Positions 1,981 through 39,800 of a stretch of 64,000 nt of DNA are shown here, in pieces (position 1 is the stretch's first letter; the number at the start of each line of letters is the position of its first letter). Location of the stretch: the NCBI RefSeq assembly GCF_037042905.1, contig NC_087251.1, positions 23,746,001 through 23,810,000 on the forward strand, read 5' to 3'. The translations under genes and the position numbers were made by a program. Source of the DNA: Lytechinus pictus (lineage: Eukaryota). The notes under the pieces were generated by a model. It was given only the letters and a program-made list of their open reading frames with translations. It did no database searches and was not told where the DNA came from.

Positions 1981-2329
1981 ATAATTGTTCATCAAACAAA
2001 GGATATGACATGAATGAGGAGGAAAAATGGCCGAAAAGGCTTGGCTTGTGTCTGTTGTGATACTAGGCTAGACAGCTGGCAGCCGTCTGTTTCGAGGAGT
2101 TTTTTAACATTTTTAATTTTTTTTTAATTTCTCCTTGTACACAGACGGCTTGCTATCGTGCAGCCACCGTTAGGGGGTTAACAATGCAAGGAGAGAGAGA
2201 GCTAGAGAGCCAGAAATAAGTTTAAGTTATATTTAGATTATGAACTTGACAATTAAAATGTTTTGTAGACTATTTCCTTCTAAAAACAGATACCGAAGAG
2301 CTTAAATCTAATTGAATATGGGAAGGGAT

Positions 2330-7578: not shown

Positions 7579-8409
7579 CTAGGCAGTCATAGATCTAGTC
7601 GTACTCACCATTTGTAAGCCTGTGCTGTGACTAAAGTGCTCACCTTGTGCCATGATCTGATAAAAGCTCTCCTTTTTAAAGAAATTTTCAGAAATATTAC
7701 CCTGTAAATGCATGTACCAAAGATTAGTTCTCCTCAAACACCGAAATTATTTATTGAGTCACGCTTTTGGGGGAAACTGCAATGTTAGATCCTCCAGAAA
7801 ATGAAATTGCATTTAATCCATTTGATTAATTGGAAAAAAGAAATTTAGCCTCTGAATGCATTTTGTGAATATCCAAGAGCTTCAATCATACCGGGTGAAT
7901 CAAGTATGAATTGTGTACATATATTAAATATTATTGTTTTGTGGTGGTTTAAATTATTTGTACTTGTTTTCCACATTTGTTCTTCAAGATTTACAGCGTG
8001 CTGTCAAGGTTTATTTCTTTCAAAAGTGAGACAATTATCTAGACATGGCTTCAAAGACATTTGTAAATAACTAACTGTATATTTGAGCATAGGAGTATTT
8101 CATATCAAGTCTCGACATTGAAAAATTGTCTTTCCGCTGAATGTCTAAATGTTATTTTGGTAAAATTGAGAATGATACACATTTAATGCCAAGAATGAAC
8201 TTGAATTGTACAAAAGAAAAAAAATGGAATTAATGTCTACTTTCTTAGATTGTAATTTGTATTTAACTTGATATTATGACAATGGAAGTAGTCTTACTTT
8301 GCAATATTTCTATGAATTTTGGAAATTTACATTTTCATTTGTAGATTTGCATATCATGGTAGCCTAGCCTACTTATTTAGTATTTTTTCTGAAGCGGAAG
8401 TAGATTTAA

Positions 8410-9003
8410 AGGACAAGTCCACCCCAACAAAAAGTTGATTTGAATAGAAAGAGAAAAATCCAACAAGCATAACACTGAAAATTTCATCAAAATCGAATGT
8501 AAAATAAGAAAGTTATGAGTTATGACATTTTAAAGTTTTACTTAATTTCACAAAACAGTTATGTGCACATCCTGGTGGGTATGCAAATGAGGAGACTGAT
8601 GACATCATCCACTCACTATTTCTTTTGTATTTTATTATATAAAATAGGGAATATCCTATTTTTCTCCTCATTGTCAAGTGAAACAACGATTAATTTCTCC
8701 CTGAACATGTGGAATGAGCATCGTTAAATACTATATGATTCTGTCAAGTTGGTCCTTATTGTCAAATCTATTAAAAAATGAAATATTGTATAATTCAAAC
8801 AATAAAAAACAAAGGAAATAGTGAGGGACATCGACTCTCCCATTTGAGTTGTGCATATCACTGTTTTGTGAAAAGTAAGCAAAACTTTAAAATGTCATAA
8901 CTTTCTTATTTTACATTCGATTTTGATGAAATTTTCAGCAAATTGCTAGTTTGATTTTTCTCTATTTATTCAAATCAACATTTTTGTGGGGTGGACTTGA
9001 CCT
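8410..9003 (+). mobile_element. ~600-bp TTAA-targeting MITE (Kolobok/T2-like), family A copy 1
   Basis: TTAA|AGGACAAGTCCACCCC ... GGGGTGGACTTGACCT|TTAA, with long subterminal inverted repeats. Confidence 0.9.
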
Positions 9004-9320
9004 TTAAGAGAAGCTTCCATACCTACCTTGAAAAATTGCAACTGATTTTATCGCAAGTTGCAGATATTTATATAAATGTGGCAAATTGGCTGAAACTGTT
9101 TGGAATTATCAATGATATCAGCTGTGCACTAGACAATCCATACTTGTTACAATGTGTGTAACCAAGGTAAATTGCAATTTGTGTAAATTACAGTTGGATG
9201 TTAAAATAGAGAGACCTCATCAATGTACCTCTGTTGGACCTGTCTTACAGATGCAGATGTCCACTATTGTCATTGTTAGCCTCCCCCCCCCCCCTTAGGG
9301 GCAGTTTTACAAAGAGTTAA

Positions 9321-10063
9321 AGGGCAAGTCCACCCCAACAAACATTTAATTAGAATATAAAGACATTGAAAATTTCATCGAAATTGGATGTAGAATAAGA
9401 AAATATGATTTTTTTTTAATTGCTTAATAATATAAAAAAGTCACAGTATATGCACATACTGGTCAGTATGCAAATGAGGCCCAGGGGAATAATGACATCA
9501 TCCACTATTTCTTTTTTCTTTTTTTTTATATGATAGATGAAATACTTTCATTTTCTTTATTGTCATGTGAAAGAAAGTTTTGTTCCTCCCTGAACATGTG
9601 GAATTACCATTGTTATAACATTTTGTGGTTCCATCAAGAGGGTCCTAATTGTCAAATCTGTAAAAGTTTAAATATTGTATAATTCAAACAATTAAAAAAA
9701 ACATAATGAGTTGTGCATAAACTGTTTCATGAGAAATAATTAAAAATTTAAAATGTCATAGCTGGGCGATTCCATAAAATAATCCACATTTTGGTACGTC
9801 TTACCTCCATTTTTCTCAAGTTTTACTTCACTTCATAAAGTGACCAAGTCATGGTCCTTTGAGAACATTACAGGCTGTCAAAAGAACAAGAAATCAGAGA
9901 CAGAAAAGTTCATGAAGGTCCCACACATAGGGGTCAGACGTACATATTTAATGGAATTGCCCAGCATTTTTATTTTACATCCAATTTTGATGAAATTTCC
10001 AGCAATGTGCTTGTGTGATTTTTTCCTGTATTAAAATCAACGTTTTTCTTAGGTGGACTTGAC
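9321..10063 (+). mobile_element. Family A MITE copy 2 (diverged, with nested insertion)
   Basis: TTAA|AGGGCAAGTCCACCCC start; interior homologous to 8410-9003; degenerate right end GGTGGACTTGAC. Confidence 0.85.
9764..9962. mobile_element. ~200-bp MITE nested in the family A copy
   Basis: TIRs GGGCGATTCCATAAA / TTTAATGGAATTGCCC; flanks AGCT and AGCA (probable 4-bp TSD). Confidence 0.75.
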
Positions 10064-11735
10064 ATCTGATAATTTAAAGGGTGATTAAAAGTCATCCATC
10101 AGTGTCATTGAATGGTATGAACTTCAATGGAAATGACGCTCAGCAACTAACAGAAAGAAATAGAGGATTTAATATCAGTTACCATTAGATGGAAGAATTA
10201 ACACAACTATCAAAGAAAGAGTTGCAATTAAAAACAAGTTGATCTTCAACCAATCAGGAGAATGCATTTTTTACATAAAGTTTAATGAAACTCTTTCTGC
10301 ATCAGGGCCCAGGTCTCCACAGTGACTCTTTTGATAATATTAAGAGTTTGTTTTCAAGAGGCTGACGGGTTTGAGGGTAGGAATGTGAGTGTTGGTGCCA
10401 AGATGGGGACCCACATGAAAAGAACTTGCGTCTTTCCCATTATGGTAACACATTGCTACAATTTCACTGTTATAGAAGAAACATTTAGATTTGATAAATG
10501 CTATGTATTTTATACTGAATTTATGTACTCAATATAGTTAATTTGAGTTTTTTCTACATTTTAGAAATGTATATTAGGTAAGAAAATATGATTTATTTTC
10601 ATTTGAATTTGCAGAGTGACTATTTTTAGCAATTGCCTCTTATGCTTTTGATAAAAAAAATGGAAAATAAATCATGAAATCATGGCAGGAGATATTTGAA
10701 CCATGTAACGTACTCTTTTAAAATCATTATCTCCTATTCTGTTGATCTAAGCAAGAATCAACCTAGAATATTAAAATAGAAAGTCAAAAGGGGCCTAAGC
10801 TTTCGATCCTAGCAGAATCTTCGTATTAAGTTGTGAGGAAAACCCAAGTTTGAAACAAATTATTATGAAGGTTGATTACAAAAATTCAGTCACAAAAAAA
10901 CAGGTCTTTACAACATATACTTGATTATACTAGTGTGCTTGGCAGTAGTGTTTTTAGACAAGACATTGACATCTGTAGCATGTCTGTAAATTAAAACATT
11001 TACTTTGATATATTGGAATTCCAATTCTTGTATTCAAGTTTTTATCTCCCTGATGATCATTTGCAAGAATGTTATCCTGAAGATGTTTAATATAAATATT
11101 TTTTGACAATCAAATCTACCATTTTGTATCCAAAGAAGCTTTTCAAGAAGGAATCTGTTCTATTTTTGCTTACAAGCTACTCAAAATCTTTACAAGCATT
11201 TGGCCAAGAACAAATTGGTCAATGAAAATCACTGGCAAAATGTTTCATGAAAAGCACACTTGACCCGCCATTTCCCGTATTTCTAATTTTTCTGGATTAA
11301 CATTTATTCACTGACATGGCCTATTTATAATTTTGTTAACATTTGATGTGAGACTTGTGTATTTTTATTTTCATAAACAGTAGTTGGGGCTTATATGTGT
11401 GTGTATTGTCTTGAACTAGGCACCTTGACACTTTCACATACATTCAGTATTAGTGTGGTAACAATATCTTCTGCTAGATGTATTTCATGTAGATATGAGC
11501 TGCCTTTTGAGTACAAATCTGAGAATATATTTATTCTTTAGGATTCATTCAAGTATATGTATTTTCACTTAGAACAGATTAAGAAAGTGTTTTGTTTCCT
11601 TTCTTGGAGGTGTATCAATATATTCAAAGAATAAATAAATATATACAAATGTAATTAAATGGCTGTAACTTGAATTAATTTTTGTGTTGTAGAATTCAAA
11701 GTTTGTGTTAAAAACCTTACATTAACCCCACCCCC

Positions 11736-11853
11736 TTCTGTCTCTGTTCATCTCCCCTCTCTGTTTCTCTCTTCCACTCTGTCTCTCTACATCTCTGTTT
11801 CTCTCTTCCACCCTGTCTCTCTCCATCTCTGCACTCTTCTCCTTTTCTCTTTC
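11736..11853. repeat. CT-rich low-complexity/short tandem repeat
   Basis: Repeated tctctgtttctctcttccac..tgtctct units. Confidence 0.7.
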
Positions 11854-12990
11854 TAGGAAGATATAAGAATGCACACATACCTTTTTTCAGAATTATTAAT
11901 CATGGATAAATATTGATTTTTAATCTTTGAAAAGTAAATACATTATGAAAACATGAAATGAGGGGGAAAATAAGTGTAATTTTCCTTAGACATCTTCCAA
12001 AATTTTACCATTAAGTGTTTCACAGACTTTATTTTATTGACTACTTTTTCAAGTAGGCACTCTTGAAAGGGTAAAATTTTTAGATTTGAAAAAAAAATTC
12101 TTATATTATTTGAAAACTAAAATCTGCATTACTTTTCAGTTACTTAACAGCTGTTGCTTTTCCCTTGTTCGATTTGAAGGGGGAAAAAAGATATGGTCAC
12201 TTTAAAAATGGTGTGAACATTTGAGTTAGTTTAAAAAGACCAATCAGAATGTCTCAAGTTGTAATATTCATGGGAATTCTTTTTGAATGGAAATACTGAG
12301 CCAATAGAAATCTTCAGGTTTCCTGACAATGATGCAGAATCATCTGATTTTGAGACATCAGCCTTACTGCATATGAAATAGTGGAGAGTGCAGTGTTGAG
12401 GGATGGAACGTTCAGTGTCGTGTGCTATTAATCTGAAGCTCCCTAATATTTGGGGGAAAAAAATACAAATATGACCAACAATCAATCTTTCCAGAAGATT
12501 TGTTGAATTTTCTCTCTAAATGAGGAATTCTATCTTTCAATGAGAAATTTACACAACATCACTGTTTGAAACCTCTCCAATGCATTTCATCCTAATATAT
12601 GGTTGGTTTCATGATTTGTCATACTACATACATGTATTTTTATCTGAGTTTAACTTTGAATTATTTATGTGTTCAAATCATATAGCATTTTATATAATCA
12701 GCAAATAATGATAGAGTTTACACATAGCAATAACTTGAATCAGCATATATTAATGAAAATGACGGAGAAATCGACTTAGTAATGCAAAAATAAATATGTT
12801 TATGAATGCAAGAGACCAACATCAAGAGCAGTAGGCTACATAAATACAGTCATGTGTTTTAAAAAGATCCAAAACCTTTCATCAAATCGTAGGTATAAAT
12901 CTGGCATAAATTGTTCACAATGAAACAAGTAGAAAGTTGGACGCTGACTGTAGATTATCCATTGGCATGTTTTTTTGAGTTGTGCATCAT

Positions 12991-13116
12991 TTATTCTTTA
13001 ACAGCACAAAGCCATGTTAGAGGAACTTGGTATGAGAATCGTGGATGACCATCATCATAGGGGATGTGCCAACTCCTTTCTGTTGACTGTATCACAGTGT
13101 CATGAGCCAGATTTTG
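12991..13116 (-). CDS. PRORP: PRORP last coding exon ([22 protein letters not shown]...WLCAVKE*)
   Basis: ttgcag| acceptor; His/Cys zinc ligands; stop TAA. Confidence 0.9.
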   Translation of the reverse strand, partial: QNLAHDTVIQSTERSWHIPYDDGHPRFSYQVPLTWLCAVKE

Positions 13117-16100
13117 CTGCAAAAAAATAACAGAAGAGTAGCATTAATAATCCAAGCATTTTCTAATACAACGCATCTCAAAATAAAGATAAACCAAATT
13201 CACAAGGCTAATATTAAAGTTTTGAATATTACCAGGATATGAAAAAGCAACAGACATGCACAACTGAATGAATGCATCTGAAAGATAACGGGTATATATA
13301 TTCTTTTTGCAAGTTTTTTTGTGAAAAAGGTTAAGTGAATAGAAAGTAAGCAGTCAATCGGAATAAGCATCCTTTCAACCTTGCATTCATGAACACAGCA
13401 ATCAAAAGGCTTGACAAAAACACCATGTCCAGGGACTAAGAAATCACTCAGCTGAGGCATTAGAAAAACTTCCATCTCAGCCTAAGTTTTTGTACCTGTC
13501 CTCTTCAACTCTGATTATTTAGTTGAGTCATGTGAGGTGTCTGATGGTATATGGTATATCAATGAAATGCTGAAAAGTTGTCCTTTCATATTTTACAGCA
13601 ACATTAATTCTTCTCTGAATATTAGTCCTGTAATCAGATAACCTTTTAAAGATAAGCACTGTATATTTTGAGTGTTGACTCAATAGAGTATGATTTCAGA
13701 CAGTGCCCTTAAGGACGTTCCACAGTTATGTTTGTGCGCATAGTTTACACTCTGCGCGCTGACGTCACAATGGATGAACAGGTGATTAATTAGCTGCGGG
13801 TATGAGCTGATTTTCTCATCTTCTGCACTTTAACTGCAGATCCAATGTGTTATTTCATGAAGCTAAAAAGTGGAATTATTCCATGGACGATTTAAAAAAA
13901 ATTCTCTACAATTTCAAAATACTTTACTCTGCAGTGCTGCCAAGAATCACGAATATTACCCCGAGTTTGAATAAATGGTAGAGTGGTTTTGATTTTTTCT
14001 TCACATAGATACAAAGTATTCGGCGCATTTTTGGTGTTTTAAAAAGCACATTTGCTCTAATAAAAATGCTGATAGTTTAAAAACAAGCACATGAACCCCT
14101 ATTTTTTAATGTGTGTACCTCTTAGGTATACCTTCCTTTACAACTCTGCAAATTTTGGTGAAAATGACATGGATTTTGAATAAAGTGCAGCATTTATTGT
14201 ACGTTTGTAATTTGTTACTGAAATTTCACATTTTTTAGATTGGGATTTTGTTATCTTTTACGCCATTTTTAAGAACTGGCAGTGCTGTTAAGCTTAAAAT
14301 TGCAGACAAATAGCACTATAAATAGATTCTCCATTCTAACGATACAATTATTAACTCTCTTGCGAAATTTTATGACTTTTTCATGTATTTTGACTAAGTA
14401 ATAAAGGTTTAAACTCATTGTAGTAATCTTGGGCGGTCTAAATATGCCAAATTCTTTTGAATGCTCAATTTTTAAGAACATCAATTTTAATAGGTGAACT
14501 TTGAAGCTCTATAGCAAAAAATCAAGCACATGGACCTATGTTAATTTTTGCATATTTCGAATATTAAGGTTCTAAAGTATCTATGTGCAAAGTTTGGTGA
14601 AAATGACATGGATTTCACTTTAACTGTGGAACGTCCTTAAAATATCCAAGATTTCCAAGGATGACATTCAAATCGTATCAACACACAATGTATTAAATAA
14701 TGATAACTAGGCACAACTAACTCATGATTTCTATGCTCAATGCAAGGTTCTAAATTTGACAAATAAAGAACAAAAATACACTTTGAGTAAATAATGTGAC
14801 GTACATTCAAGTATTAATCTCACATTTACATTTTAAAAATACACAGAACCCAACATGATTTTTAACTGATTAATTCTTTGTTAAAATTAATATCAGATTA
14901 AAAGTGAAGATACTATTGAAATGATTTCCTCCTATTCTATGAGCGTAAAGGTTTTTTATACCCAAAGAACAAAAAGATAATTTTGGAGACCTATTTTTTT
15001 TTAGTAGATTAAAATGTAAATTTTATTAATTCATTAGTTTTATGTTGCACAATTTACCAACATGTATTTTCTAATGTCATATCTAATTTTATCTAATAAT
15101 TAATTCAATTAATTGAAGCTTCGTTGACATGTCCATGGCAAAAGTATAACCATTACCTTAAAGATCGCCTGTCCATCTCTGAAGTCCACAGGAGTGAGCT
15201 GTTGCATACGTTGCCATTTAATGAAAGACAGATGAGCTTCTGGACTGAGTAAGGCTTTGTGGTCACGAAGTAGATCTCTACTGACATACTTGGTCTTGGT
15301 ACCACTGTGCATGGTGGCATACAACATAAAAGGGTCATCTTCTGACCTGTATGGTAAGAGGCAAGGGATCAAAGGTCATTTGGCTGCAGAAGAGTGATGA
15401 AATGCAATAATCTTCAATATTTTCATCACAACGATGTAGATCAGAATAAAATATCAGTTTGAATAGAACATTGAATTACACATCATTTGTTTTTGGCCAG
15501 CAGCATGGGCTGAACGGGTCAATTTACAAACTGTTCAATGAGGTTGAAACAAAAAATATAATTCAAGAGCAACATAGTAACAACATATAAGATATAAGAG
15601 ATTACATGAAAATAATGGATTTCTAAGGCTATGTACTGGAAATACAATTTTATGAAAGGAGTGGTAGAGAGAAGAGGAACAGTGTAATGTAGCATGCAAA
15701 CAGTGTCTTTTGTTTCAATGCACAGAGTTTGCAAATGGTACAATTGATATTTTTACTGTAAAAAAAAAATCTATTAGCTATTTAGAAACTATTAGATAAG
15801 CTCCAGGTAAGCTCTTTAATATTTGTCATTTGAGATATTCCATAAATGTACATCCTACTCGCCATGTTTGGACCTTCCCAAAGTGATTTGTCCCTGTTTT
15901 GTGCTTCATATCAAAAGGTGTATGGTTTTTTAATAATTATAGCTTGTGCTTGAGTATTTAATTAATAGAAGTACAAAATTAAGAAAAATGGCAGTCGGAT
16001 GAACAGAAAGATTCATCATTTAACAGTATACAATACTTTTGCATTGGATACTTACATATTTTGGGTAAAGAAGCAGTCAGCCAAGTCTTGTATAACACCC

Positions 16101-18962
16101 AAGTCATTTTTATCATACTGAGATCTTTGTTTCAACATATGATGTCTTCCAAGGACAAGACAGCGGTAACCACGGTTCTTGGTAAGGTATTCCACAAATT
16201 GTCTCAGCTGGGACACCAAAACATAAACCATAATATGAACACTGAAATAATCATCTCATTTATTGTAGCATTGTGTCTTTGAAGGGTCTTATAGATAAAT
16301 ATTATCATTAATCAGGTCTAGCAACCATCAAGTATGGCAAACAGAATGTAGGCTATATGTTAGGTAATATCTAGCAAAAGCATTAATTGCTTGTAATTTA
16401 TGGTAATACATTCAACCAAATATTTTGTGGAATTTAAAGCATTGCTTTAATTAGAATTATGCTTTTACATGATTTATAAACTTAACTATGACTGACTTGG
16501 ATGCACACAAACGTTCTAGCCTTCAATTTTAGAAAATAAAGGCCAAACTATTCAGACAAAATCATTGCTTTTTATCATAAGTACCAAGACACATTTGGGA
16601 GATTTTTAACACACCACTTTTCCTGGTGACTTTCTCTTCTTGAGTTTTGCAACGTTGAGTCCATCTATGACAATGTCATATGAGGGTCCAGAATCAATGA
16701 AATCCATGAATGCATCAAGTTCCTTTGGAGTGGTCTTCCTGAAGATATCCTTACCTCTTATTACCTAACATAAAGGAAGAAAGAAAGAGAGAAAGAATGT
16801 ACACTATGACTAAAGAATAAATACGAGTAAAATATGACACATTTTAAAAGGAGATAAAATAATCATGCAGGGACACAGGAAACGTGTATAACTTGATTTT
16901 TGCAAAGTCTTAAAGAAAAGAACAAAAATGCCTATTCAGATTTAGCAAGTTACAAATATAACAAAGACTTTATATCAACCAAATCAAATATTGAAAATAA
17001 TGCCAATATGGTGACACCAATAAGAGTGAACATAATTTTTTTCCAAAAAATTATCTCTATACACTGTTTTTTACTTGAATACCTTGCTAAAGATCTCTTC
17101 TCTAAGATTGATGAACTCTTCCTCACTTATCTGCAGAGGTTCAAGATGACTGGAGCAAGACTTACAAACCCCTGTAGGGCTCATCTGGGTGAAAGAAACT
17201 CGCCATGTCTCATGTTGCTTGCTAAGATAAAGTAGAGACAAAAATAAAATTATATTACATATATGTAAGAATTATTGGAATTCATTGATTTTAGTTGACA
17301 TTACAAAAATCTTTCATCATATAGAATACAGATCAAATTCTGGCCTTTCATAATGAGTTGGTGACTGACATAATACTAATAGTTGAGAGAACATACTCCA
17401 TAGCTCAATGAAATTCTAGAATACAAAGAAATAATAATCCTATATCACATTTCAAGCAATCATAGATATACTGAGCACATATTAGCCATCTTCTTTCTAA
17501 ATGCCCCCCCTGAAGAAATGGAAATGTTACAAGATTAGGGGGGTGCTTCACAAAGAGTTTTAGCATGACTTAGAGTCGCACGTAAATGTCCAGTTGCTTG
17601 CTGAATAAAGGCATCACCATATTGGTCAAATCATGCTATTCACATGCTAAGTACTGCAAATTATTTATATCATATATCATCTCGGCATCAGTCACACTTA
17701 ACTCTTTGTGAAACACCTCCAGGGGTATTGCACTCTGTGATTCAATGTCCTCTATCTTCATTTGCTATTTTGTTTTGTTGTTTTTAAAACAAAATTTTCA
17801 AGTATATGATACATACTCTGAATTACATATATTAGAAACTCAGAAGTTAATTAATTTAGACAATTCTAACTATCAGTGGAACTTTAATGAAAAATAACTT
17901 ATCATGAATTCACCTCTTGAACCAGTAACCCAGTTCCTTTGCAACATCATGTGAAGGAAAGTGCCTCTTCGCCCTCTGATAATTCAAGAGTCCAATCACC
18001 ACATCCACATTGTCCTGTAGAACAGAATGGTCCTCAACGCTGCTAGTAAAGGATGAGAGCATCTCTATAACACTGGCATCTGTTGGTATGAGATCTCTTC
18101 TGTAGTGGTCTTCCAGCAGAGATCTGGCAAGACATTTATCACCATGCTGACAAGAAGCAATCAGGTAAGGTTCTAGGATTCTTGACGTCACGCAATCGGC
18201 ATCATTTGCCTTCGCAAGAAACCTGCTGCTCTCCTTCCATCGGTCTGTCATACACAAACCAGATACAGCATTGGCTATGGTTCCCTTATCCATCATCCTA
18301 TGGTTCTCCTCTAACCAATCAACACACCAGAGAATTCCTTCAAGATCCTGACACGTTGTACACATGAAGAGACATTTACTCACTAACTGATACTTCAAGG
18401 CAGAGGGTTCATCCTTGATGAAGGCAACAAGAGACTTCGCAGACACCGATAGCCCTTGTGCAGCAATTGATTCCATGGCCCGCAGTTCATATTCAAAAGT
18501 GCTTCTTGCTATGTAGTGCTTTTTCTGTCGCTTCTGCTCTTCCATCCACTTGATTTTCATGTGGTTCCACTGTTCTACTGTAAACCATTGGTCTTCAGTA
18601 AAATCAAGTAGTTTTCTACTTCTCCTCCTTGACCCACTTTCTTCTGTATGCTTATCATCTTGCATCAAAGTACTTTCATGTGTCACTGTCCTCTGATGCA
18701 TGAAAATTGAAGATGGGACAGCATTTACACTCAAGTGACAAGGATATAGGAATCCACATTTTCTTCCATGGTTTGTGAATATTGACTGAAGAGTACTAAT
18801 TTGTGAAATATACAATGAAGTTCTACCACAAAATCTGAATGATTCAGCTCTTCTTCCAAATAATATCTTCATGCCAAATGACTTCAGTTGATTGCCTCTA
18901 GGAGCCACTTGCTTCATGCTACATATTGATAAAAGAAGAGCCATATTCTTTGGCACAAGCAT
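12991..18962 (-). CDS. PRORP: Mitochondrial protein-only RNase P catalytic subunit (MRPP3); exons 18962-17914, 17221-17083, 16764-16615, 16207-16056, 15346-15157, 13116-12991 (~601 aa)
   Basis: Basic N-terminus and PPR-like helical region. Zn ligands CKSC and WHIPY..WLC. NYN catalytic motifs [33 protein letters not shown] and [10 protein letters not shown]. All introns GT-AG and phase-consistent; TAA at 12993-12991. Confidence 0.95.
13713..14636. mobile_element. 924-bp non-autonomous TTAA DNA transposon (Kolobok-like) in the last PRORP intron
   Basis: Perfect 16-bp TIRs GGACGTTCCACAGTTA with TTAA on both sides; internal direct repeat TTTGGTGAAAATGACATGGATTT present twice. Confidence 0.9.
15157..15346 (-). 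CDS. PRORP: PRORP coding exon 5 ([11 protein letters not shown]...RDLLRDHKA...FIKWQ)
   Basis: Catalytic aspartates present; AAG|gtaatg donor. Confidence 0.92.
16056..16207 (-). CDS. PRORP: PRORP coding exon 4 (LRQFVEYL...LVLGRHHML...DCFF)
   Basis: cccag| acceptor and |gtaagt donor. Confidence 0.9.
16615..16764 (-). CDS. PRORP: PRORP coding exon 3 (...[11 protein letters not shown]...[12 protein letters not shown]...)
   Basis: 150 nt in frame; first catalytic Asp motif. Confidence 0.9.
17083..17221 (-). CDS. PRORP: PRORP coding exon 2 ([36 protein letters not shown]...)
   Basis: cttag| acceptor and AAG|gtattc donor; CxxC zinc motif. Confidence 0.9.
17538..17720. mobile_element. Short MITE in a PRORP intron
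   Basis: GGGGGGTGCTTCACAAAGAGTT ... AACTCTTTGTGAAACACCTCC inverted termini. Confidence 0.7.
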
Positions 18963-21628
18963 ATCAATATCTCAATTGTTAAATGTAAAACAATACAAGA
19001 TATTAACATAACCAGTCTTGGTAGAACTTTGGCAGACACACTCCATATAAGAACATCAGTTCTGAAATAGCAAAAACAATTGATCAAATTAAATGTCTGA
19101 CAGTAAATTGGAATTAATATAAATAAAAATAGGAAACATATTTGGTGAATTTAATGAAGCTGGATAGCAAATTTATGAATTTTTTAAACATTTTATCTTT
19201 ATGACTAGAAAACTGTTCCCCAATGTATTGACATTAATTGGTGATTTGTGACAATCATGAGAAATTGTGTATCTCCTAATTCATCCTCAAGTCTGTATGT
19301 CCCTAGGAGTTCAATACTGTAGTTTGTCCCAGAAAAAAAAAAAGATATGAGAATCATTTATGCTTCATCATAACTCAATATGATTAAAAAATGACACATC
19401 ATGGTAAAGCTTAGAGTCTCCTCTCTCATCTGATGTAAATAAAATGATGCCACATCATTTAATAATGATTTGAAAAAAAATCTAAAGATAGCAAAAAGTA
19501 ATTTCGCGTACAGTATCTCAATGTAAATTATAAAATCACATGCCTTCAAAGTTCCTTATCTGCTCCATATCATATAGAGTGATCTGCTCTTTATATTAAT
19601 GCCCAGGCCAGTGCAGAGACCATAAAAGATGCCAGATCAAAATTGTCTCTACCTTTCACGTTTGCATATTTTTGCTTTTGTATATTAACACATCGTATGG
19701 AGATGGAAGACTGTAAATCAGATGGAGTGATCAAGTTGAACAGGATTACCTCACCTCATAACATTATGATGATAATATTTAGCCTTGTTTCTTGTATTTA
19801 TTGTCAAAAGTTCACCATTTTCAAGTCTAATTTCAATCAATTTATTAGAAAAATTTTTTAGCTTTCAAGCTATTTAGAACCATGCCATTGCGTTAGTGTA
19901 GCATAGAGCTTTGACGTGACCTGTTTTTTTAATTTTACTGCAAGTCAAGAGTCCATTTGATGGCAAAAAATTAGTTTTTTTAATTTTCTCTATAGAAATT
20001 CTATACCTCAGATTTGCTATATTTTTAAATATATATATATATATATATTACAGGTGGACTAGGATATGTTGCCATTTCAAGGTATTTTCACATTCATAAT
20101 CAAAGAAAATTACTAAACTAATTTAAGAATAACAAAAATCTACTTCTTTAAATTAAACCAATTCTTGCATTGATTTTTTTTCTTGAGCACTTGAGTGGAT
20201 AAATGCTTTTTTTAACCCAGTCAGTTTGGCCAAAAGCTAAATGATTTCTTTCAAATATTTTTTTTTGTAGGAAAGAAAGAAACCGTAAAAATGTCGGACT
20301 ATCATGATCACGCTCACAACGCGTCTCACGAACACATCCTCTCACACGTATTGCGAGGTTAGTATTACTGGTATACTAACACATCACATACGCATTGAGT
20401 TACACAGCATCGACGCTCCAACTAAAAAATAAACATATGGGACCGTGATAAGAGCAAAAGTGGATAGCGGACGACGCGGTTTTTTAGAACACAGATTAAC
20501 TTGGCATTTTGGAGTGATATATCAGTCTCTTTTGATATAAATTATACAAGAGAAATCAAAAATCGTGATATAGGCCCCGCTCGAGAAAAACTTGTAATCG
20601 ATCATACCTCAATATCTAGGTTGCTAACTTCAGCTCACTATATATACTCGTGATATAGGCCCCGCTGCTGTGTTGAATGGCTTAGAATGTCCGTTCGCGG
20701 GGCCTGTTTCACGAGTATATACTATAACCGTTATATAGGCCCCGCATACGGCACTTCAGACACTCCAACACAGTAGCGGGGCCTATATCACGAGTATATT
20801 ATTAAGCTTGCATCCTAAGATAGTCGCGAAACTGGCCCCGTCCAATGCGCTTTTCCCAGCATTCGCACGTGTGTGGGGCTCGGATGACGGCTATTAGTCT
20901 ACTCGTTATCGAGGCCCCTTACACTGTTATATCATGGAAAATAACGTGGTTGTGGAGCTTGTTTCCCCGGCCGGTGAGAATTATCATGGGCGGCGCTGGA
21001 GGGGGGGGAGGGCCTCAAATTCATTTTCCAAATAACCAAGGAGAGAGAATAATAAAAATGTGTATGTGTTTATTTGTCGATTTACTTATATATTAATATA
21101 GTTATTAATTTGTATTTATTTATTTATCAATCTATTTCTATTGCCATGTATTTCATTCATCTTTTAATTTTTTTGTATTATTTATTTTTCTTTTGTGATA
21201 TAGAGAGTCAGAGGTATCATTCGTTTTTAATTCTTTTTATGTGTGGAAGTTCATTTATTTATTTATTATCTATATATTTATTCGTTTATATTTTTTAATT
21301 ATTTTTCGTTATCTGAGAGGCGTGCGTAGGCCTAGGTCTTATGTTGATACAGGCTCGTACATTTCATTCATTTTTATTCATTCTGTAAGTTCTTGTGGAT
21401 ATACAAAATGATGACGGCAATCAACGTAAAGCTCAGAATATTTACTCTTTCACCTGGTATCCTCAGAAGATTCCTCGATCATTCAGGCATGAATGACTCT
21501 AACAATTTGAAGAAAGTATTATAATCAAAATTTAAAAATAATCGTTTACCTTTTTTGAATTAGTCGTGGTTGAAGGGTGTTATAACCTTATTTTTTCGTT
21601 ACATAAAATGAATTTATAGTTTATTTAA

Positions 21629-22209
21629 AGGTCAAGTTCACCCCAGAAAAATCTTGATTTGAATAAATAGAGAAAAATCAAACTAGCATAACGCTGGAAA
21701 TTTTATCAAAATCGGATGTAAAATAAGAAAGTTGTGATATTTGAAAGTTTCGCTTATTTTTCACAAAACAGTGATATGCACAACTCATATTGCTTGCAAA
21801 TGATACAGTTGATGATGTCCCTCGCTATTTCTTTTGTTTTGTTATTGTTTGAATTATACAATATTTCAATTTTCACAGATTTTACAATAAGGGCCAACGT
21901 GACTGAACCATATATTCCACATGTTCAGAGAGGAATTAATCATTGTTTCACTTGACAATGAGGAGAAAATTTGAAAATATATTTCATATAATAAAATACT
22001 AAAGAAATAGTGAGTGGGTGGCGTCATCAGTTTCCTCATTTGCATACCGACCTGGATGTGCATATATAACTATTATTTTGAATTAAACTAAACTTCAAAA
22101 TGTTATAACTTTCTTATTTTACATCCGATTTTTATGAAATTTTCAGCGTTATGATCGCTCGATTTTCCTCTTTTTATTCAAATCAAATTTTATGGGATGG
22201 ACTTGTCCT
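21629..22209 (-). mobile_element. Family A TTAA MITE copy 3, nested in the foldback element
   Basis: TTAA|AGGTCAAGTTCACCCC ... GGGATGGACTTGTCCT; opposite orientation to 8410-9003. Confidence 0.85.
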
Positions 22210-25200
22210 TTACATTAATTTTGTTATTCATGTATTTGTTTGTATTAAACTTTTTGTTTTATTTGATGTTAGACCAACAATTATCGTTAATTTCTCTTTT
22301 TTGTGTATGGATTTGATCTCTCTCTCTATACCGTATATTATTATCTATATAACAAACTATATTTTGTTACCTTATAATACCACTGAAGGCAATACGTGAA
22401 ACGTTTATATATTGATATATATATATATAGAGAGAGAGAGAGAGGGGGGGCCTAATACATTACTATTTCAAGTTCTCCTTCGTATTGCTTCACTTATTCA
22501 TTTCCTGGTTTATTCATTTATTCGTTCATGTTTGTGCTGTTTTGGGAAAAAAATGTTGTCTATTAATTGACACGATAGGCCTACCCCGAGAGGGGGCAGT
22601 ATACCCTGACGTAAAGTTGATGATAATTAAAGCAGAAACTAGAAAAAATATTCTTAAAGGTTTGCTGAAAATATATTTTTTTAATTGCCACGCATTTTGG
22701 TTAAGAAGTTCGCTATTCTCTAATCAAATATTTCCATTCTCACACTTTAATTAATGTTTATTATATTAAATTGTATTCTACTCATTTATAATGTAATGAA
22801 TGACTTGCTAAGATCAATTGTAACGTCACTTTCACCTGCCCAGTAACCTGCACAATCAAGGTACTAATGGATAATTTGTTTTTCTGTTCCAATCATGAAG
22901 AAGCGTAAATGAAAATCAGCCCCTTAGTTTGGGATTTTGAAAACACAAAAACGAAATCACAACGAGAATAACGTGTTGTGATTTGGTTTTTGTATATCAA
23001 AAAACAGAAAAATTAAATTAGAAAAACTTTTGTGCTTTATCTGATTTCTCATGCTAAATTTGTGTTTGTATATATATAAAAAAAAAACAATATCAGAACA
23101 TGCCACGATTCGTGACCTCACTGTCAACTGCATGAAAAACAGCACCTATAGAATTGTTGGATGTCGCCTAGCAACAGGATACTATGTTAGTGGTAATTAA
23201 ACTACATGTAAATCGATGTAAAATATTGATATTCACAGATGAATCCAACATGACCAAGCAATATCATTTTGGTTATATATCCTAAATATAATGCTAATCA
23301 AATAAAGCTAATTTCTTACCCTACAGAAACTATATTAGACGAAACTGACAAGGTAACAAATGTCACTTAAACACAACAGTCATATCATTTTGTCTTCAAA
23401 AAATTTAATCATACAAACAAAGAAATTTATGAAGCATGATTTGATTATTAAATCAAGTTATGTAAATCTCAAATATAGAGAAATTAAAAAAAATATCCAC
23501 GCAAATCATATTCGATAAACGATCAAGCAGGGCACTGGGAACGATTTTTAGTAGGGGGTGCTGTGGGTTTTGTTTGAAAAAATTGCAAAAAAGAAGAAAA
23601 AACATTACACTCCAAGATGATGGGGATTTTGGTAAAAAATTATTGCTCCCAAATAAAAAAGAATTACAATCGATTATAGACCTATAATTTTATGCTCCCA
23701 TCAATTCAAACAAAACGATTCAAGGAAAACGTCAATTATACTAAAATCATTTAAAATGCATTATTATCCTTTGTAATGGATCAAATTCGACAAGGAAAGT
23801 TAAGTGTTGAACAAGATGCCCCCCCCCCTCCTCTCTCACTCCTACATGTCAGCAGTGTTTAAAAACATAACCTTTTCGTGTCGATATAAATTATATCAAC
23901 AAAATTCATCTCGAACTTCGATTGCATTCGCATGCTATTTTCAAGTGTGAAAATAAAATCAGCTCGTGCTCCTCTTTCACATCCTGTTCATGCGTCACTG
24001 TAAAGTCCTTTTCCCATTTTCAGTTCAGTAATTAAAATATTAAATAAACGTTTGTTGTTTAGGGTTTATAAGAGCTTAGTGTGCTCCATTCATAGCTTTT
24101 AACACATGGATTATAATTAATTTTTTTTTTCACAGTTAGCGTTCTCGTTTAGTTCGACCGTATAGTCATGGTAGGCCTATCTTGTTGGTAAATATTAAAG
24201 TAAAATGTACATAAACTTCCCTATCACAACGCCCCCCCCAAAAAAAAAAAAAAAAAAAAAAAACTTACCTTTTCCTCTTTGAGTGGCCGACCAGGGATTT
24301 CATGAATGGCAATGTGTCCAACCGGCCTGTACGGCTGTACCCCCGCCCCTTTAAAAATACTGAACCCGTACCTGTGTGTATATTTTTTTCTGACGCATTC
24401 AACCAGACAGACCTATGCGCCACCAACTGTCTTCTCAAATTTGCGCCCCCCCCCCCCCCCCCCCCGCTACGAAATCTCGGATCTGGGGGACACATTAAAC
24501 TCCTGAAATAAAATATCACAGATAAGGAAATAGTAGAATAATTCGTGCATGAAAATAAATTATAAGAACACATTGAGACACTTTTCCGGAATTATTAAAT
24601 CTTTTAATAAAATCGGGGGCGAGGGTGTATGAATTAGTAAATAAATGAATACCATATAGGCGAAGAAAAAAAATGCAATATTTGGATGGCGAATTAATGA
24701 AATGACGATCGATCAATAAATGTTTTTTATAATAATTTGTTGATGCGATATGCCGTTATTTCAGGCCTACTATACCATGTATACCAGCAAACAATCGAAA
24801 TCCATCATTTTTAAAACCATACCATCAAATACAGTTACAAACAATCTTCAAGTGGATTGATTAAAATGAATGCAGGATGAGAAAATAATTTAAGTTGATA
24901 GGTTAATTTGCTGAAGAAATACTGGGATATCGATGAACGGTAAATTAGTAAGCTTTTAAAAAAATAAAAGATTAATAAATTGATATTTAGGTAAGAGAGA
25001 AAACGTACTTAACGTACTTAGATAATATAGATATTGATAGGCCTATCCCCAATTGTGGGGGCCGGGAGGGGGATAAGTCACAGTAAAATATAGATTAAGT
25101 TAATTATAGCGTAGATATCCCTCAAGCAATTATAAAATTGACCAAAAGAAAATTAATACATTTTCCCCGAATGAATATGCCTATTCGTTTTCTTTTCTGA

Positions 25201-25835
25201 ACTTAAATGGATGAAAAGTGGGGAAGCGGGGGGGGGGGTTTATGAAAGGAATGAAAAAAATACAAATTGATAATACGCAGGAAGCCAGATGAATGATTCA
25301 ATATTGAATAAGAGAAGAAAGCCGATTTGAAAAAAATGTATATTGACTTCTTACATCCAGGTGATTATAAATAGATTATGATACATGAATGAATAAATGG
25401 ATTCATTCGCAGCATTACGTCAAGTGAAAGATTGGGGGAAATTATACACGAACTATACAATTTAATAATTAATGACACCTCCCTCCCCGCAAAAAATTAT
25501 TCAAATGAAATGCTGAATAAAACGAGGTTATCAAATAACTAGCAAATACAAATTACGATGGATAATGGAACAAAAATAACTATATATAGGCCTAACGTTA
25601 CATCGAAAACACTCCAAAAAGATTAGCAAATGAATGAATCATTCACGGATTTATCAAAAGTTATTCAGAGAGCAGATCTTTAAAAGCAAAATATTAGCAA
25701 CACGAGGGCGGCGTCAGGTTGTGAGGGGTCTGGTTGATTTTTCTCTGAAAACTGGAAGGATAACATCATGCCTAAAACAAGTCGCCCATATGGATCCTAC
25801 TCCATTGTCATGCAGAGTTTTTATACTCACTTCTT

Positions 25836-26037
25836 TATTATTCCCTTGTTCTTTTGAAAATAAATTGGAGCCCCCCGGGCCCCTACAGCGCCGCGCATGA
25901 TACCACTCACCGGGGAATCAAGACCCACGACCACGCTATTTTCCATGATATAACAAGTGTAAGGGGCCTCGATAACGAGCTCAATAGCCGTCATCCGAGC
26001 CCCACACACGGCGAATGCTGGGACAAGCGCATTGGAC
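25836..26037. repeat. Diverged third, partial copy of the foldback TIR inner segment
   Basis: Direct repeat of ~26430-26659 (TTTTCCATGATATAACA..GTGTAAGGGGCCTCGATAACGAG..AATAGCCGTCATC..GCGCATTGGAC). Confidence 0.85.
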
Positions 26038-26039
26038 AT

Positions 26040-26430
26040 CACAAAAAAACTGAAAACAAATAAATTAAATGATTAATGAATAAATATAAATACATTAATT
26101 AATCAACATAAATACATTAATTAATCAATTAAAATAGATTGAAATAAGTGAACTTCCACACATAAAAATAATTAAAAACGAATGATACCTCTTACTCTCT
26201 ATATCACAAAAGAAAAAAAAACTGAAAACAAATAAATTAAATGATTAATTAATTAATTAAAATAGATTGAAATAAATGATACCTCTGACTCTCTATATCA
26301 CAAAAGAAAAAAAACTGAAAACAAATAAATTAAATGATTAATTAATCAATTAAAATAGATTGAAATAAATGATACCTCTGACTCTCTATATCACAAAAGA
26401 AAAAAAAAAGAAAACAAATAAATTAAAATT
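26040..26430. repeat. AT-rich ~93-bp tandem array (about 3 units plus partials)
   Basis: Unit TGATACCTCTGACTCTCTATATCACAAAAGAAAAAAAACTGAAAACAAATAAATTAAATGATTAATT... at ~26183, 26277 and 26370; one inverted copy at ~21180-21260. Confidence 0.85.
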
Positions 26431-26995
26431 TATTATTCTCTCTCCTTGTTTATTTGGAAAATAAATTGGAGTACCTCCCCCCCCCCCCCCCCACCCACTC
26501 CAGCGCCGCCCATGATAATTCTCACCGGCCGGGGAAACAAGCCCCACGACCACGTTATTTTCCATGATATAACAGTGTAAGGGGCCTCGATAACGAGTAT
26601 ACTAATAGCCGTCATCGGAGCCCCACGCACGTGCGAATGCTTGGAAAAGCGCATTGGACGGGGCCAGTTTCGCGATTATCTTAGGATGCAAGCTTAATAA
26701 TATACTCGTGATATAGGCCCCGCTACTGAGTTGGAGTGCCTGAATTGCCGTAGTGCGGGGCCTATATAACGATTATAGTATTATACTCGTGAAACAGGCC
26801 CCGCGAACGGACATTCTGAGCCATTCAACACAGCAGCGGGGCCTATATCACGAGTATATAGAGTGAGCTGAAGTTAGCAACCTAGATATTGAGGTATGAT
26901 CGATTACAATTTTTTTCTCGAGCGGGGCCTATATCACGAGTATGCCGAAATCAATTAATAACATTAAAAATGTGTTGAAAGTTCGCAGAACTCAC

Positions 26996-27150
26996 CTAAG
27001 TTGATCTAAAATGCTTATTTTTGTCTCCTGCTTAGGCTTAGCCTAGGCTTTTTCAACAAATCAACGGTAGAACACCTGAGAGGATGGTGGAGTCGATTCA
27101 ACAAATTAATAAAGAAAACCAATACACAACAAAATATCGCGAGCAAAATG
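26996..27150 (-). other. Candidate non-coding first exon of PRORP
   Basis: Perfect donor AG|GTGAGT (26995-26990). The ATG exon of PRORP has an acceptor at 19063-19062 that needs an upstream exon. 5' end unknown. Confidence 0.4.
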
Positions 27151-27789
27151 AAAACCAAATTTTCATGTTACCATCTTTTCAAAATACTTTCACTTTCTAA
27201 CCGAACGATTTTTAATAAAATTATTTGGTGAGAGTATTGCTACATTTTTTTTTAAATAACATCCGTGTGAATTAATAACTTCCGTGTGAATTTTAATAAC
27301 ATCCGTTTGTACTGTATTATATTGAATATGTATTGTTACTTTGATTATATTTTGAAAAATTTGTTGAACGGAAATAAATAAATCTAAATCTAAAATTATA
27401 CTGACCTGTCTCGAGTCATGCACGAGTGTTTACTTTTACCCCAGATTATGTTACCTTTAATTGAAACCGAGTCATGGGGGGTCGGGCCGGGGGGGGGGGG
27501 GTTAGTGAACATTGTGCACTCATTGGCTCCTGATATCTCCAGACGCCTGTCACATCTTTACTGGTCAATTATCTCAAATTTTTAAACGTAAAATCTATTC
27601 ATAATTTTGACATTGTAAGATATAAAAAATAAACAATTACAGATTAAAAAGGCAAAGCAAAGTATATGTTCATATAGGCGTGATTTTTCTTGCACGAAGA
27701 TTAGCACACGGTGACTTTTGGCACGCTCATGCACTCACGTAGAGCCTACGTGTTAGTCAAAATTACTCAAAATAACCTTGCCTAATTCA

Positions 27790-28391
27790 AGGTCAAGTCC
27801 ACCCCAGAAAAACGTTGATTTTAATAAATAGAGAAAAATCAAACAAGCATAATTCTGAAAATTTCATCAAAATCGGATGTAAAATAAGAAAGTTATGACA
27901 TTTTAAAGTTTCGCTTATTTTTCACAAAACAGTTATATGCACAACTCAGTGACATGCAAATGAGGGATTCGATGTCGTCCATCACTCACTATTTCTTTTG
28001 TTTTTTATTGTTTGAATTATACAATATTTCCATTTTGAGATTTGACAATAATGACCGACTTGACTGAACCATCAAATGTTAAAACAATGGAAATTCCACA
28101 TGTTCAGGGAGGAATAAAACTTTGTTTCACAAAATAATAAGGGGAAAATTAGGATATTTTATATAATAAAATACAAAAGAAATAGTGAGTGGATGACGTC
28201 ATCAGTCCCCTCATTTTCATACCAACCAGGATGTACATATACTGTTTTACCGGTGAAAGTAAGCTAAACTTTAAAATGCCATAAATTTACACATAACTTT
28301 TACATCCGATTTTGATGAAATTTTCAGTGTTATGCTTGTTGGATTTTCTCCTTTTTTTCAAATAAACTTTTATCAGGGGTGGACTTGTCCT
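27790..28391 (-). mobile_element. Family A TTAA MITE copy 4
   Basis: AGGTCAAGTCCACCCC ... GGGGTGGACTTGTCCT|TTAA. Confidence 0.9.
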
Positions 28392-36660: not shown

Positions 36661-36872
36661 TCAGTTTCAATTGTCAGTATCATTTCTTATGAGTTTGATC
36701 ATGCAATTGCAAATAACTCGAGTTTTTTGTACTCGACAGTGAGAAAGTTGACTTGAAGATGAAAGTACAAGAAGATTTTTAATTATATGACCACCACCTT
36801 TCATTATTGAAATAAAAGCAGATAGGGTCTAATTAAACAAGGATTTAATATAGAAACAACCCAGTGTCAACA

Positions 36873-39800
36873 ATGCCAGTTGCACAAACCAGACTTGAAA
36901 TCTTGCAAGTTCACAAGTTTCTGCAGTGTGTACGATCGAAGGACAAAGCGCAGATTGAGAAACTGTGCTCAAATGGAGTCCCACATCTTGTCAACTATAG
37001 TGAACCAGAGGAAGGTGAAACAGGATTGCATTTGGCAGCAAGGGTCAATGATGAGGAGATGGTGCGATTTCTTCTTGACTTGGGAGCCCATCCCAATGTC
37101 ATCGATCTTAAAGGGAGAACAGCTGCAATGAGAGCTGCAGAGTTTGGCCATGTCCAGACGCTTGAAGTATTAGCCACTGCTGGCTCGGACATGAAGATAA
37201 AAGACACTGATGGAAAAGGTAAAGAAGTGTTTCAACAATAAATTTTTCATAATTAAAAGTGATGTCTTCATAATATTTATTAAATAAAATTAGAACAGTT
37301 AAGATTTATGGATTGACAACAAAATCAAGTGCTTTTTAGTCTACAAATAATACATTGTATGATAGAGGTACATGTAGACCCCTTTTTTCAGAAAATTCCA
37401 CTTTCATTTTGTTGGGCAAGTGATTCATTTTTTAAGTCTGTTTAACAATTTTCTAGTGGTTTCACAGGTTTGTAAAGTTTGTCTTCAAATTGAATGTTAA
37501 AGCTCAAAACTCAACACAATGTCTAACAGTCTATTTTTTTCTTCAATTTTGCAGGTATTTTATTCTACTGTATTTTGCCAACCAGCCGTCATGCTCGCTG
37601 TACATCAATAGTAATTGAGAACGGAGCAGAATGTAACAACATGTCTAATGATGGCATGCCTCTTCTGGTTGTAGCCTGCCTGGAAGCAAAAGAGAATGAA
37701 GAAATCTGTAAGAAACTCCTTGACCATGGTGCCGATCCAAACAGCACCCATCCAGTAAGTTTAATCTCAATCCCTCAAGCAGGGGCGGATCCAGGATTTT
37801 TCAAAAGGGGGGGGGGGCACACTTCTGATTTAAGTTTATTTTACATTACAAATTTTAATTGTGCCCCCTGGATCCGCCAGTGCCCTCAAGGGTTAAACAT
37901 GATTATTATGAGCAAGGAGTGCTTGGTGAGGACAAAGCCAAACCAAGGAGGTGTATATTCAATCGCAGGAAATCAAATATCAAAATGTATAGTCTATGGT
38001 ACCGGTAATATGAATATATGAATATAAGATGCAAATTTGAGTAGTCAATATAAAGACAGAACCGGAGCTAGTGTTATAAAAAATAAAATGTACTGAATAG
38101 TGAGTTGGTACTTTTGGGGTCCAAATCCACTTTCTCAAGCATCAAGAATCACATAAAGTACTATGAACTAAATAAAGGTTTTTATCTAGAAGATAATGAA
38201 ATAGATAGGTATATTCCTTGATACCTCTGTTGTTTGTTAGCTCACCTGTTTGTTTAAATTGTGATTGCTGACTAATTGTGCAATTTGATTTCAAATCTAA
38301 TTTTATCTTCTATTTATACAGTCAACTGGAAGAACAGCTCTGAATGCTGCAGCTGGTAGTGGTAGCGTTGAAGTCGTCAAGAATATCCTCACTAAAGGGG
38401 GTGATGTGAACACACCCGACAAGAACATGTTGACTCCTACGCTCAGAGCATCCATGCGAGGCCATTTTGAAGTTCTTCAAGTATTAGCGAGCTACGGGGC
38501 TGACTTTGGATGTGTTGATGTCATCCTGAACACACCTGTACACTATGCTGCAGAGGGTGGTCATGCCTTGTGTTGTAGATACCTTGCACAAAGAGGTAGG
38601 TTGAAGTTAGTCAAGATAGTAAATAGGCTTCATCAATGAATTGTGTGCTTGCGGGCTAAACTAAAGCCTAAAAGAGTGTTTATTCTCTAAGCTACGATCA
38701 GGTCTGTATCCAAACCAAACAAATTTGAATTGGATACCATTGAAATGCTAGATTTCGTCTCCCTCCAATATTCATTACAAAGATAATCTAGGCAATACAT
38801 TTTTAAAAAGTTAGTTGATATTGATGTTGTTTTTCTTCCAGTTGTCAACAGGCAATCTGTAAAAATGTCAACTACTTTTAAAAGGTCTATTTTATAAGTG
38901 CGCTTTTATCACATTTCCACTTTGATGATTCAAATCCAGTCCAGACAGACTGCTAAATCCTGTGTTGTATGTGAATGTGCCCCTATGATGGGAACCCTAA
39001 GGAATTAAATCCTTATGCAATATCAGAGAGTATTTTACATTTTTCTTGCTGACTTAGATTTAATACTAATTACATGTACTTAATTTGATTCTAAAAAGAA
39101 CAGGTCGTATTTTTATAACTTACAGTAGCTTCTGATGAATTACATTTACATGTATATTCATTGTTTTTCAAGTTACATTCATGTACAAAATCATTTTGCA
39201 TGAAATAAGAAATTGATTGCTTTAATGACAGATGCCAGCTCTAAGTTATTTTCATTGTTATTGTTGAATACTAATCTACTCAATATTTTCTTCTATCTTA
39301 AACAGGCGCCAAAGCACATATGAAGAATGAGGATGGCCTCCTTCCCAAGGTAATTGCCAAGAACTATGGATTCAAGGATGCGCTGAAGGAATGCAAGAAG
39401 GCTGAGAAACTTGCCAAAAAGATCCACACGGGTGGTAAACTCCCCACTGAGCCATGGGCTGTCAGAGTGTACGATTGGGCAAATGCCAGGCAAGACGAAC
39501 TCTCAAAGAAGTTCATGGAGATGGACCCTGAGATGAATGAAGTTGTGTCAAAGGAACAGTTCTACGATGTCCTCATGTCGCTAGATGCACCCATCGATGA
39601 AGAAGACTTTAAGAAACTATTCCAACTTCATGACAAGACAAAAGAAAACGTTATCAACTACAGTGACTTTTTAGGAGCCAAGAAGTATGTTCACAAAACG
39701 TATCTCATGTCAGCGTACGCCAAAAAAGAAAAGAAAAAGAAGGGCAAGAAGGGAAAGAAGAAGAAGGGTAAAACCAAAGTGCCAATGCCAATTTGTTTAG

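Follow-up and report, generated by a model that had tools for sequence, protein, structure and literature searches.

A Merlin-type non-autonomous transposon with foldback-like arms inserted at the PRORP locus of Lytechinus pictus

Merlin transposons have terminal inverted repeats (TIRs) of 24–462 bp, a conserved terminal 5′-GG, duplications of 8–9 bp at the target site (TSDs), and a DDE_Tnp_IS1595 transposase (PMC8101967). In echinoderms, the superfamily is represented in that paper by eight sequences in two species. Most foldback elements have been assigned to Mutator/Phantom, and separate lineages can acquire a foldback structure independently (PMC4079207). Here, a 64,000-nucleotide stretch of the sea urchin Lytechinus pictus (NCBI RefSeq assembly GCF_037042905.1, contig NC_087251.1, positions 23,746,001 to 23,810,000, forward strand; the window in what follows) was analyzed for an element with long inverted arms, which is inserted in the 5′ region of PRORP, a gene of mitochondrial RNase P. 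Positions given alone are those of the window.

The left arm of this element supplies a 5′ leader exon of the PRORP mRNA, as seen in one RNA contig and in stranded read depth. Taken as a whole, it is probable that a non-autonomous element of the Merlin superfamily was inserted at PRORP and that its left arm serves as a leader exon and as a likely promoter. In this explanation, the element is a young cut-and-paste transposon, one of about 55 copies. It entered the CpG-rich 5′ region of PRORP after the split of L. pictus and L. variegatus, duplicating GAAATCAA. The outer ~250 nt of the left arm are now transcribed outward on the PRORP strand, and this arm exon is spliced from a donor 48 nt inside the end of the element to the acceptor of the ATG exon. 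Transcription would begin in the arm, just downstream of a segment rich in CCAAT, E-box, and GC-box motifs, and the transposon would act as an alternative promoter.

Insertion site and structure of the element

The orthologous locus of L. variegatus (L049) lacks the element. The window sequence 27271–26947 aligns to 5592–5898 of this locus, and the sequence 20559–20413 aligns to 5891–6035. The two flanks are thus contiguous there and share the 8 bp of which L. pictus has two copies; the octamer GAAATCAA is present once, at L049 5891–5898. In the window, it is present at 20552–20559 and at 26947–26954, as a preliminary description of this DNA, made from the sequence alone, had already reported for both ends. 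The empty site proves the insertion and places it after the split of L. pictus and L. variegatus.

The empty site also gives the bounds of the element, which is 6387 bp long (20560–26946) and consists of an A-type end, an interior, and a T-type end. The inverted repeat with near-identical arms of ~500 bp, described at 20563–26946, is real, and its start is 20560 rather than 20563. The left arm (20560–21056, plus strand) bears the A-type end and the right arm (26429–26946, minus strand) bears the T-type end. The arms are 98% complementary between 20586–20719 and 26782–26915, 95% between 20747–21012 and 26487–26752, and 90% between 20998–21056 and 26429–26487. Aligned from end to end, they show 56 differences in 533 columns. 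They are CpG-rich with ~50% GC, against ~30% GC in the surroundings, and with ~500 bp each they make up only ~16% of the element.

The T-type end, GGCATACTC..., is intact; the element reads ...CACGAGTATGCC at its right end, and the terminal 25-mer matches at C7:23772922–23772946 on the minus strand. The A-type end is GGCAAAATC... in other copies, and its first 4 nt (GGCA) are gone here. A loss of about 7 nt had been proposed for the left end. This was overstated, because the left end had been compared with the right end, and the two types of ends differ naturally. The left arm holds six copies of an ~18-nt motif, ACTCGTGATATAGGCCCC, in direct and inverted orientation. Judged from the sequence, this motif is most likely a transposase-binding site.

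Next to the right arm, 93-bp AT-rich tandem repeats (2.6 units) occupy 26181–26427, with an inverted partner at 21162–21260; the number of units differs among copies of the family. An additional partial copy of the inner arm, inverted and ~83% identical to 20840–21065, is seen at 25823–26037. All open reading frames (ORFs) of the element are 108 aa or shorter, and a comparison of ten frames with Pfam gave no match, in line with the earlier remark that no transposase ORF lies between the arms.

The interior contains a segment (21622–22191) of an unrelated, very abundant small repeat resembling miniature inverted-repeat transposable elements, a second copy of which is located at 27783–28356. This palindromic repeat has thousands of genomic matches and a summed RNA-contig depth of 2–3 × 10^4. 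It also occurs in L. variegatus (L049:4720–5153), and one copy of the transposon family (L033) is without 21789–22305.

The CpG-rich sequence noted just left of the element is confirmed. The observed/expected ratio of CpG jumps from 0–0.5 to >1 at about 20250, and the jump is found at the same orthologous point in L. variegatus. The low-CpG stretch over the PRORP exons would correspond to a methylated gene body. From this boundary, it can be argued that the former start of the gene body was left of the element. Of the proposal that the insertion split the CpG-rich start of PRORP intron 1, the CpG-rich 5′ region is borne out, and the position in intron 1 is not supported. In L. variegatus, a 2.4-kb CpG-rich segment (L049:6035–8448) stands where L. 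pictus has 75 unrelated bases (window 20413–20338). It lies directly upstream of a conserved GTTC/GTGAGA site (slashes mark boundaries in the motifs given here), and makes a second rearrangement at the 5′ side of PRORP.

Family copies and superfamily assignment

The terminal 25-mer of the family is found at 54 + 56 = 110 sites in the genome, while the reversed control pattern is found at 0 sites, a difference well outside what chance would give. This number of ends corresponds to about 55 elements. When the 812-Mb genome was searched with the left arm, at least 40 full-length matches with 93–99% identity were obtained on many contigs, typically as inverted pairs 6–8 kb apart. Copies homologous to the window element over its full length (93–98%) are present on 12 or more other contigs. 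The 5.4-kb interior is likewise common to copies on other contigs with 93–98% identity, which indicates that the full 6.4 kb transposes as a unit. A GGCAAAATC end is paired with a GGCATACTC end in every copy. The median divergence of the arms from the consensus is 3–4%. Perfect 8-bp duplications of unrelated sequence were seen in all 12 other copy pairs tested. Further genomic copies of the arm with 8-bp TSDs, anticipated in the preliminary description, therefore exist, and their number excludes a local duplication or an assembly artefact.

Longer copies contain unrelated nested inserts or expanded tandem repeats, and shorter copies (0.7–2.9 kb) are deletion derivatives. The copies of roughly 10 kb (L038–L043 and L045) each have different, mutually unrelated extra segments. 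As autonomous partners they were rejected: the extra segments are nested insertions, not transposase genes. Frames of 462 aa and 327 aa in L039, plus six shorter ones, gave no Pfam match, and no transposase remnant was found in the non-autonomous copies. Since no family copy has a long ORF of its own, the family is considered as non-autonomous. The two frames of L039 belong to a nested 5.5-kb insert (L039:883–6398), and the tail of the 462-aa frame is acidic and repeat-rich. In one copy among 14 (L032, G000:C1:8780087–8786886), the interior is flipped with respect to its A-type and T-type ends, which is what recombination between the long arms would produce.

The characters of the family agree with those of Merlin. 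The TSDs are 8 bp in all 12 tested copies and in the window copy, where the empty site confirms the length. The termini begin with 5′-GG, and the consensus ends are those given above over about 110 termini. A genome search with PF12762 (DDE_Tnp_IS1595) found matches at C3:5966636–5967082 (minus strand) and C3:5969801–5970247 (plus strand), each in an intact frame of 461 aa (E 7e-23 against the Pfam domain). The two ORFs are divergently oriented in a palindrome of 2 × 2.7 kb with 98.5% identity. Both lie inside a family end pair that extends over 19 kb, from C3:5959341 (A-type) to C3:5978504 (T-type), and a 1.6-kb family copy directly adjoins this end pair. About 760 bp past the right edge of the palindrome, 556 bp are ~84% identical to the interior of the family. 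The C3 element with its two intact ORFs is thus a likely candidate for the transposase source. No further close copy of the 461-aa transposase gene was found in the genome search. The palindrome (G000:C3:5965521–5971368; L053/L054/L058/L059) is bordered by 185-bp tandem repeats. At four other Merlin loci (L051, L052, L055, and L057), no informative TIRs were seen within 1.5-kb flanks.

A second link comes from L. variegatus. When close orthologues of the 461-aa transposase were searched for, the best match was only 52–61% identical. The nearest L. variegatus homologue (P0016) is encoded at locus L068 in a 9.1-kb element with 557-bp arms, which are 98% complementary, and a DDE_Tnp_IS1595 gene. 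The ends of this element, GGCATAATCGTGATATAGTCCCC.., are identical to the termini of the L. pictus family at 21 of 25 positions, and its arms repeat the same motif, ACTCGTGATAYAGKCCCC, every ~80 bp. This Merlin element (L068:6214–15331 in L. variegatus CM031032.1) has a Piwi gene on one side and a PCNA gene on the other. The frame for the transposase is broken into two parts (294 aa + 175 aa), and the 8-bp flanks of the element differ.

Two other superfamilies were considered and rejected. Membership in Mutator/Phantom would predict a MULE transposase, yet none of the 17 genome matches of the MULE domain PF10551 lies inside the family end pairs listed, which include all but 10 of the 110 terminal sites. 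The hAT superfamily is characterized by 8-bp TSDs and YARNG-type termini. The TSDs have the right length. The termini, however, read GGCA..., and a T at position 2 with an A at position 7 is not seen in the 13 TSDs. The arms, with outer motifs, inner tandem repeats, and no ORF, are long and modular as in foldback elements, a likeness that is structural only. A kinship with the Mutator-type FB and TU elements had been suggested; both the diagnostic features and the transposase link favour Merlin instead. Based on the TSDs, the 5′-GG termini, the transposase links, and the absence of MULE matches in the listed pairs, the family is filed as Merlin-type with foldback-like architecture. As far as could be found, this non-autonomous Merlin family is undescribed, and the literature on TU elements and L. 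pictus transposons yielded nothing usable.

The left arm in PRORP transcripts

PRORP is encoded on the minus strand. Its ATG exon is 17915–19061, with the start codon at 18962–18960; 349 residues are identical to the L. pictus protein P0004 (XP_063958334-type), and the Pfam PRORP domain is at 15112–15375. RNA contigs and reads were mapped over the window positions 18600–24599. In run X1, a contig of 1121 nt with a depth of 20 (20.1) passes exon 2 to 19061 and continues at 20608. The joint skips 1546 nt, and the skipped sequence has the ends CT..AC, that is, GT..AG on the minus strand. It is considered as a real splice, because a de Bruijn contig can only have junction words that occur in reads. 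The AG at 19063–19062, recognized earlier as an acceptor of the ATG exon, is thus real and used in RNA.

The intron removed in this transcript (19062–20607, minus strand) includes the CpG-rich flank 20251–20559 together with the last 48 nt at the end of the element. Its donor, GTATGA at 20602–20607 (context TTGAG/GTATGA), is located in the arm, 48 nt from the end of this copy. The donor motif is intact in 41 of 44 family arms. By a rough estimate, this is about the expectation without selection for a family diverged by 3–4%, and no selection is claimed. The transcribed exon in the left arm, read outward, is 20608–20863 on the minus strand; the 3′ end is exact, and the 5′ end, from a 258-nt X1 contig, is approximate.

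Stranded data agree with this exon. In two stranded rRNA-depleted runs, the depth at 20600–20799 is 9.7 and 12.3 on the PRORP strand versus 1.7 and 0 on the opposite strand. It falls to 1–3 in the neighbouring bins (20800–20999) and to ≤0.1 in 19200–20199. PRORP-strand transcription is therefore seen mostly at 20600–20800, and at a low level on to about 20200. This pattern comes near to PRORP transcripts that start left of 20550, which the preliminary description had named as evidence against its own reading. Just upstream of the arm exon, in the sense of transcription, there are a putative ATTGG box, a CACGTG E-box, and a GGGCGG box. Most likely, transcription starts in the arm near 20800–20870, and the arm would be an alternative promoter.

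The arm exon could also be read as an internal cassette exon (20608 to ~20863) in a transcript from an old promoter to the right of the element, placed between the old exon 1 and the ATG exon. Its donor at 20608 has been proven, and exonisation of intronic transposons is common. However, no acceptor AG is present at the 5′ limit of the contig, where the minus strand reads ...CGTGCG/AATGC at 20863. Besides, the depth drops ~5–10-fold upstream of about 20800, and no exon-level signal is seen deeper in the element. A cassette exon is therefore quite improbable.

In the preliminary description, PRORP exon 1 would end at 26996 or farther right, and all of the element would belong to intron 1, where the two arms would form a stem of ~500 bp with an ADAR/Dicer or splicing effect. 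It had noticed a minus-strand donor beyond the right end, and this donor does exist, 49 nt out: TTAG/GTGAGT at 26996/26995, conserved together with its surroundings in L. variegatus. As a candidate exon-1 donor it is placed at 26991–26996 (minus strand; bases AG/GTGA), with the exon end at 26996, GT at 26995–26994, and the full motif to 26990. Low-level reads on both strands across the interior would also fit such an intron. On the other hand, the sole junction observed for the acceptor of exon 2 uses the donor within the left arm at 20608, not that at 26996. The PRORP-strand depth of the interior is 0–2, summed over about 55 copies, far below the 10–12 of the arm exon, and the depth of the other strand is similar. 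The low-CpG stretch covering the PRORP exons stops at about 20250, left of the element. Taken together, an exon 1 at or beyond 26996 with the element inside intron 1 has a low probability.

The stem itself finds no supporting transcript within 18600–24599, although its absence is not proven: no evidence was seen there for a transcript spanning both arms, and the right arm is beyond the mapped range. No cluster of A-to-G or T-to-C changes was seen among the RNA variants in the left arm, and the suggested A-to-I editing is not borne out. The arm variants (20683, 20728, and 20760) coincide with bases found in the right arm or in other copies, and are considered as copy or allele differences. RNA reads stop in long C runs at a G/C homopolymer of the element (window ~24465), with 15–20 reads per run.

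Another possibility is that a native promoter and first exon of PRORP lie at about 20250–20450, with the element neutral upstream and the arm junction a minor by-product. Run X15, from another study, has a depth of 34 in 20200–20399 and about 65 in exon 2, with none in 20400–20599 and 0 at the joint 19061→20608. The CpG boundary at about 20250 is shared with the orthologous point of L. variegatus, and the donor-like GTTC/GTGAGA is conserved in both species. In X1, however, the junction contig and exon 2 are equally deep (20.1), and the depth in 20200–20399 is 0; from these depths, the arm exon looks like the major form in the X1 sample. No junction from 20200–20399 to 19061 was reported. This possibility is unlikely, and the X15 signal may represent another PRORP 5′ exon left of the element, or a different allele.

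Several facts, including the X15 signal, weigh against the arm of a Merlin-type element as the leader exon and promoter of PRORP. The junction comes from one contig of one run, and the raw-read runs are too shallow (exon 2 depth about 3). Arm reads with ≥95% identity may derive from any of about 110 arms, and the peak is not locus-specific. The contig may end at 20863 because the contig graph is broken there. The conserved donor at 26996, which is outside the mapped range, could belong to an upstream exon. The link to the C3 transposase is circumstantial, as only 556 bp (~84%) are common with the family interior; the sequence read from the ORFs toward the ends of the C3 pair has gaps of 2.6 kb and 5.3 kb, and a TSD around this pair is unconfirmed.

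It can be speculated that each family arm is an outward promoter with a consensus-like donor ~48–52 nt before the end, that every insertion would be a bidirectional promoter-plus-donor trap able to capture the next acceptor downstream, and that the ancestral first exon of PRORP was replaced or overridden within the last few million years. This extension is tentative, and is doubtful at present. If it is true, chimeric transcripts would arise in large number from copies throughout the family. A hint of this is given by a 2.2-kb X1 contig, which runs from an arm outward across the terminus of another copy.

In RefSeq, two PRORP proteins are represented by seven mRNA variants, which would fit 5′ ends that vary. 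The isoforms differ by 15 N-terminal residues: 601 aa (ATG at 18962) versus 586 aa (ATG at 18917). Older L. pictus models of PRORP (P0006) differ at ~3% of residues, which suggests high heterozygosity. An exact-protein look-up of transcript contigs gave no record for P0004 or for the 330-aa partial product. The upstream region of S. purpuratus has only a weak 27-nt match to the window, so exon 1 is not placeable by conservation. The neighbours of PRORP are a UAA-family nucleotide-sugar transporter gene (6565–7575, plus strand) and an ankyrin-repeat gene (36849–40126, plus strand). The gene order PRORP / ankyrin (divergent) / transporter is kept in S. purpuratus and L. variegatus.

Comparison with known systems

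A sea-urchin element of foldback appearance is hereby placed in Merlin, a superfamily scarcely documented in echinoderms, and a candidate master copy with intact transposase ORFs is present in a laboratory model species. The insertion is lineage-specific and datable, and it now gives the leader exon of an essential housekeeping gene. It offers a tractable case of the turnover of promoters or first exons driven by DNA transposons.

The family resembles Merlin (Feschotte 2004, via PMC8101967), whose DDE transposase is IS1595/IS1016-like, in its 8-bp TSDs, 5′-GG termini, long TIRs, and the tandem repeats of some copies. DDE_Tnp_IS1595 genes are found between family ends in L. pictus and between homologous ends (21 of 25 nt) in L. 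variegatus. It differs in three points. The arms of about 500 bp (557 bp in the L. variegatus relative) are slightly above the quoted range of 24–462 bp. The window copy and about 55 relatives have a conserved non-coding interior of 5.4 kb with no gene. The candidate master copy on C3 has the transposase gene twice, as a palindrome.

With the foldback elements (Drosophila FB, D. virilis Tetris, and sea-urchin TU; PMC4079207), the family shares long arms with outer short motifs and inner tandem repeats, the lack of coding capacity, and 8–9-bp TSDs. The flipped interior of L032 is a further likeness. Unlike those elements, which are mostly Mutator/Phantom, it shows evidence for Merlin, and its arms are only ~16% of the element; the likeness to TU is by description alone.

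Among alternative promoters and first exons derived from transposons, the best-documented cases are those of mammalian LTR elements and plant DNA transposons. As in those cases, a lineage-specific 5′ insertion gives a non-coding leader exon with a donor, joined to the native ATG exon. The difference is that the donor here is in the TIR of a non-autonomous DNA transposon and reads outward, and that the promoter activity of the arm is putative. This kind of system is already known and is not new in kind, and an outward promoter with a donor in a TIR would be its most novel aspect. What is new, as far as could be found, is the family: a Merlin family in which a species-specific insertion has come to serve as a 5′ exon of PRORP, and possibly as its promoter.

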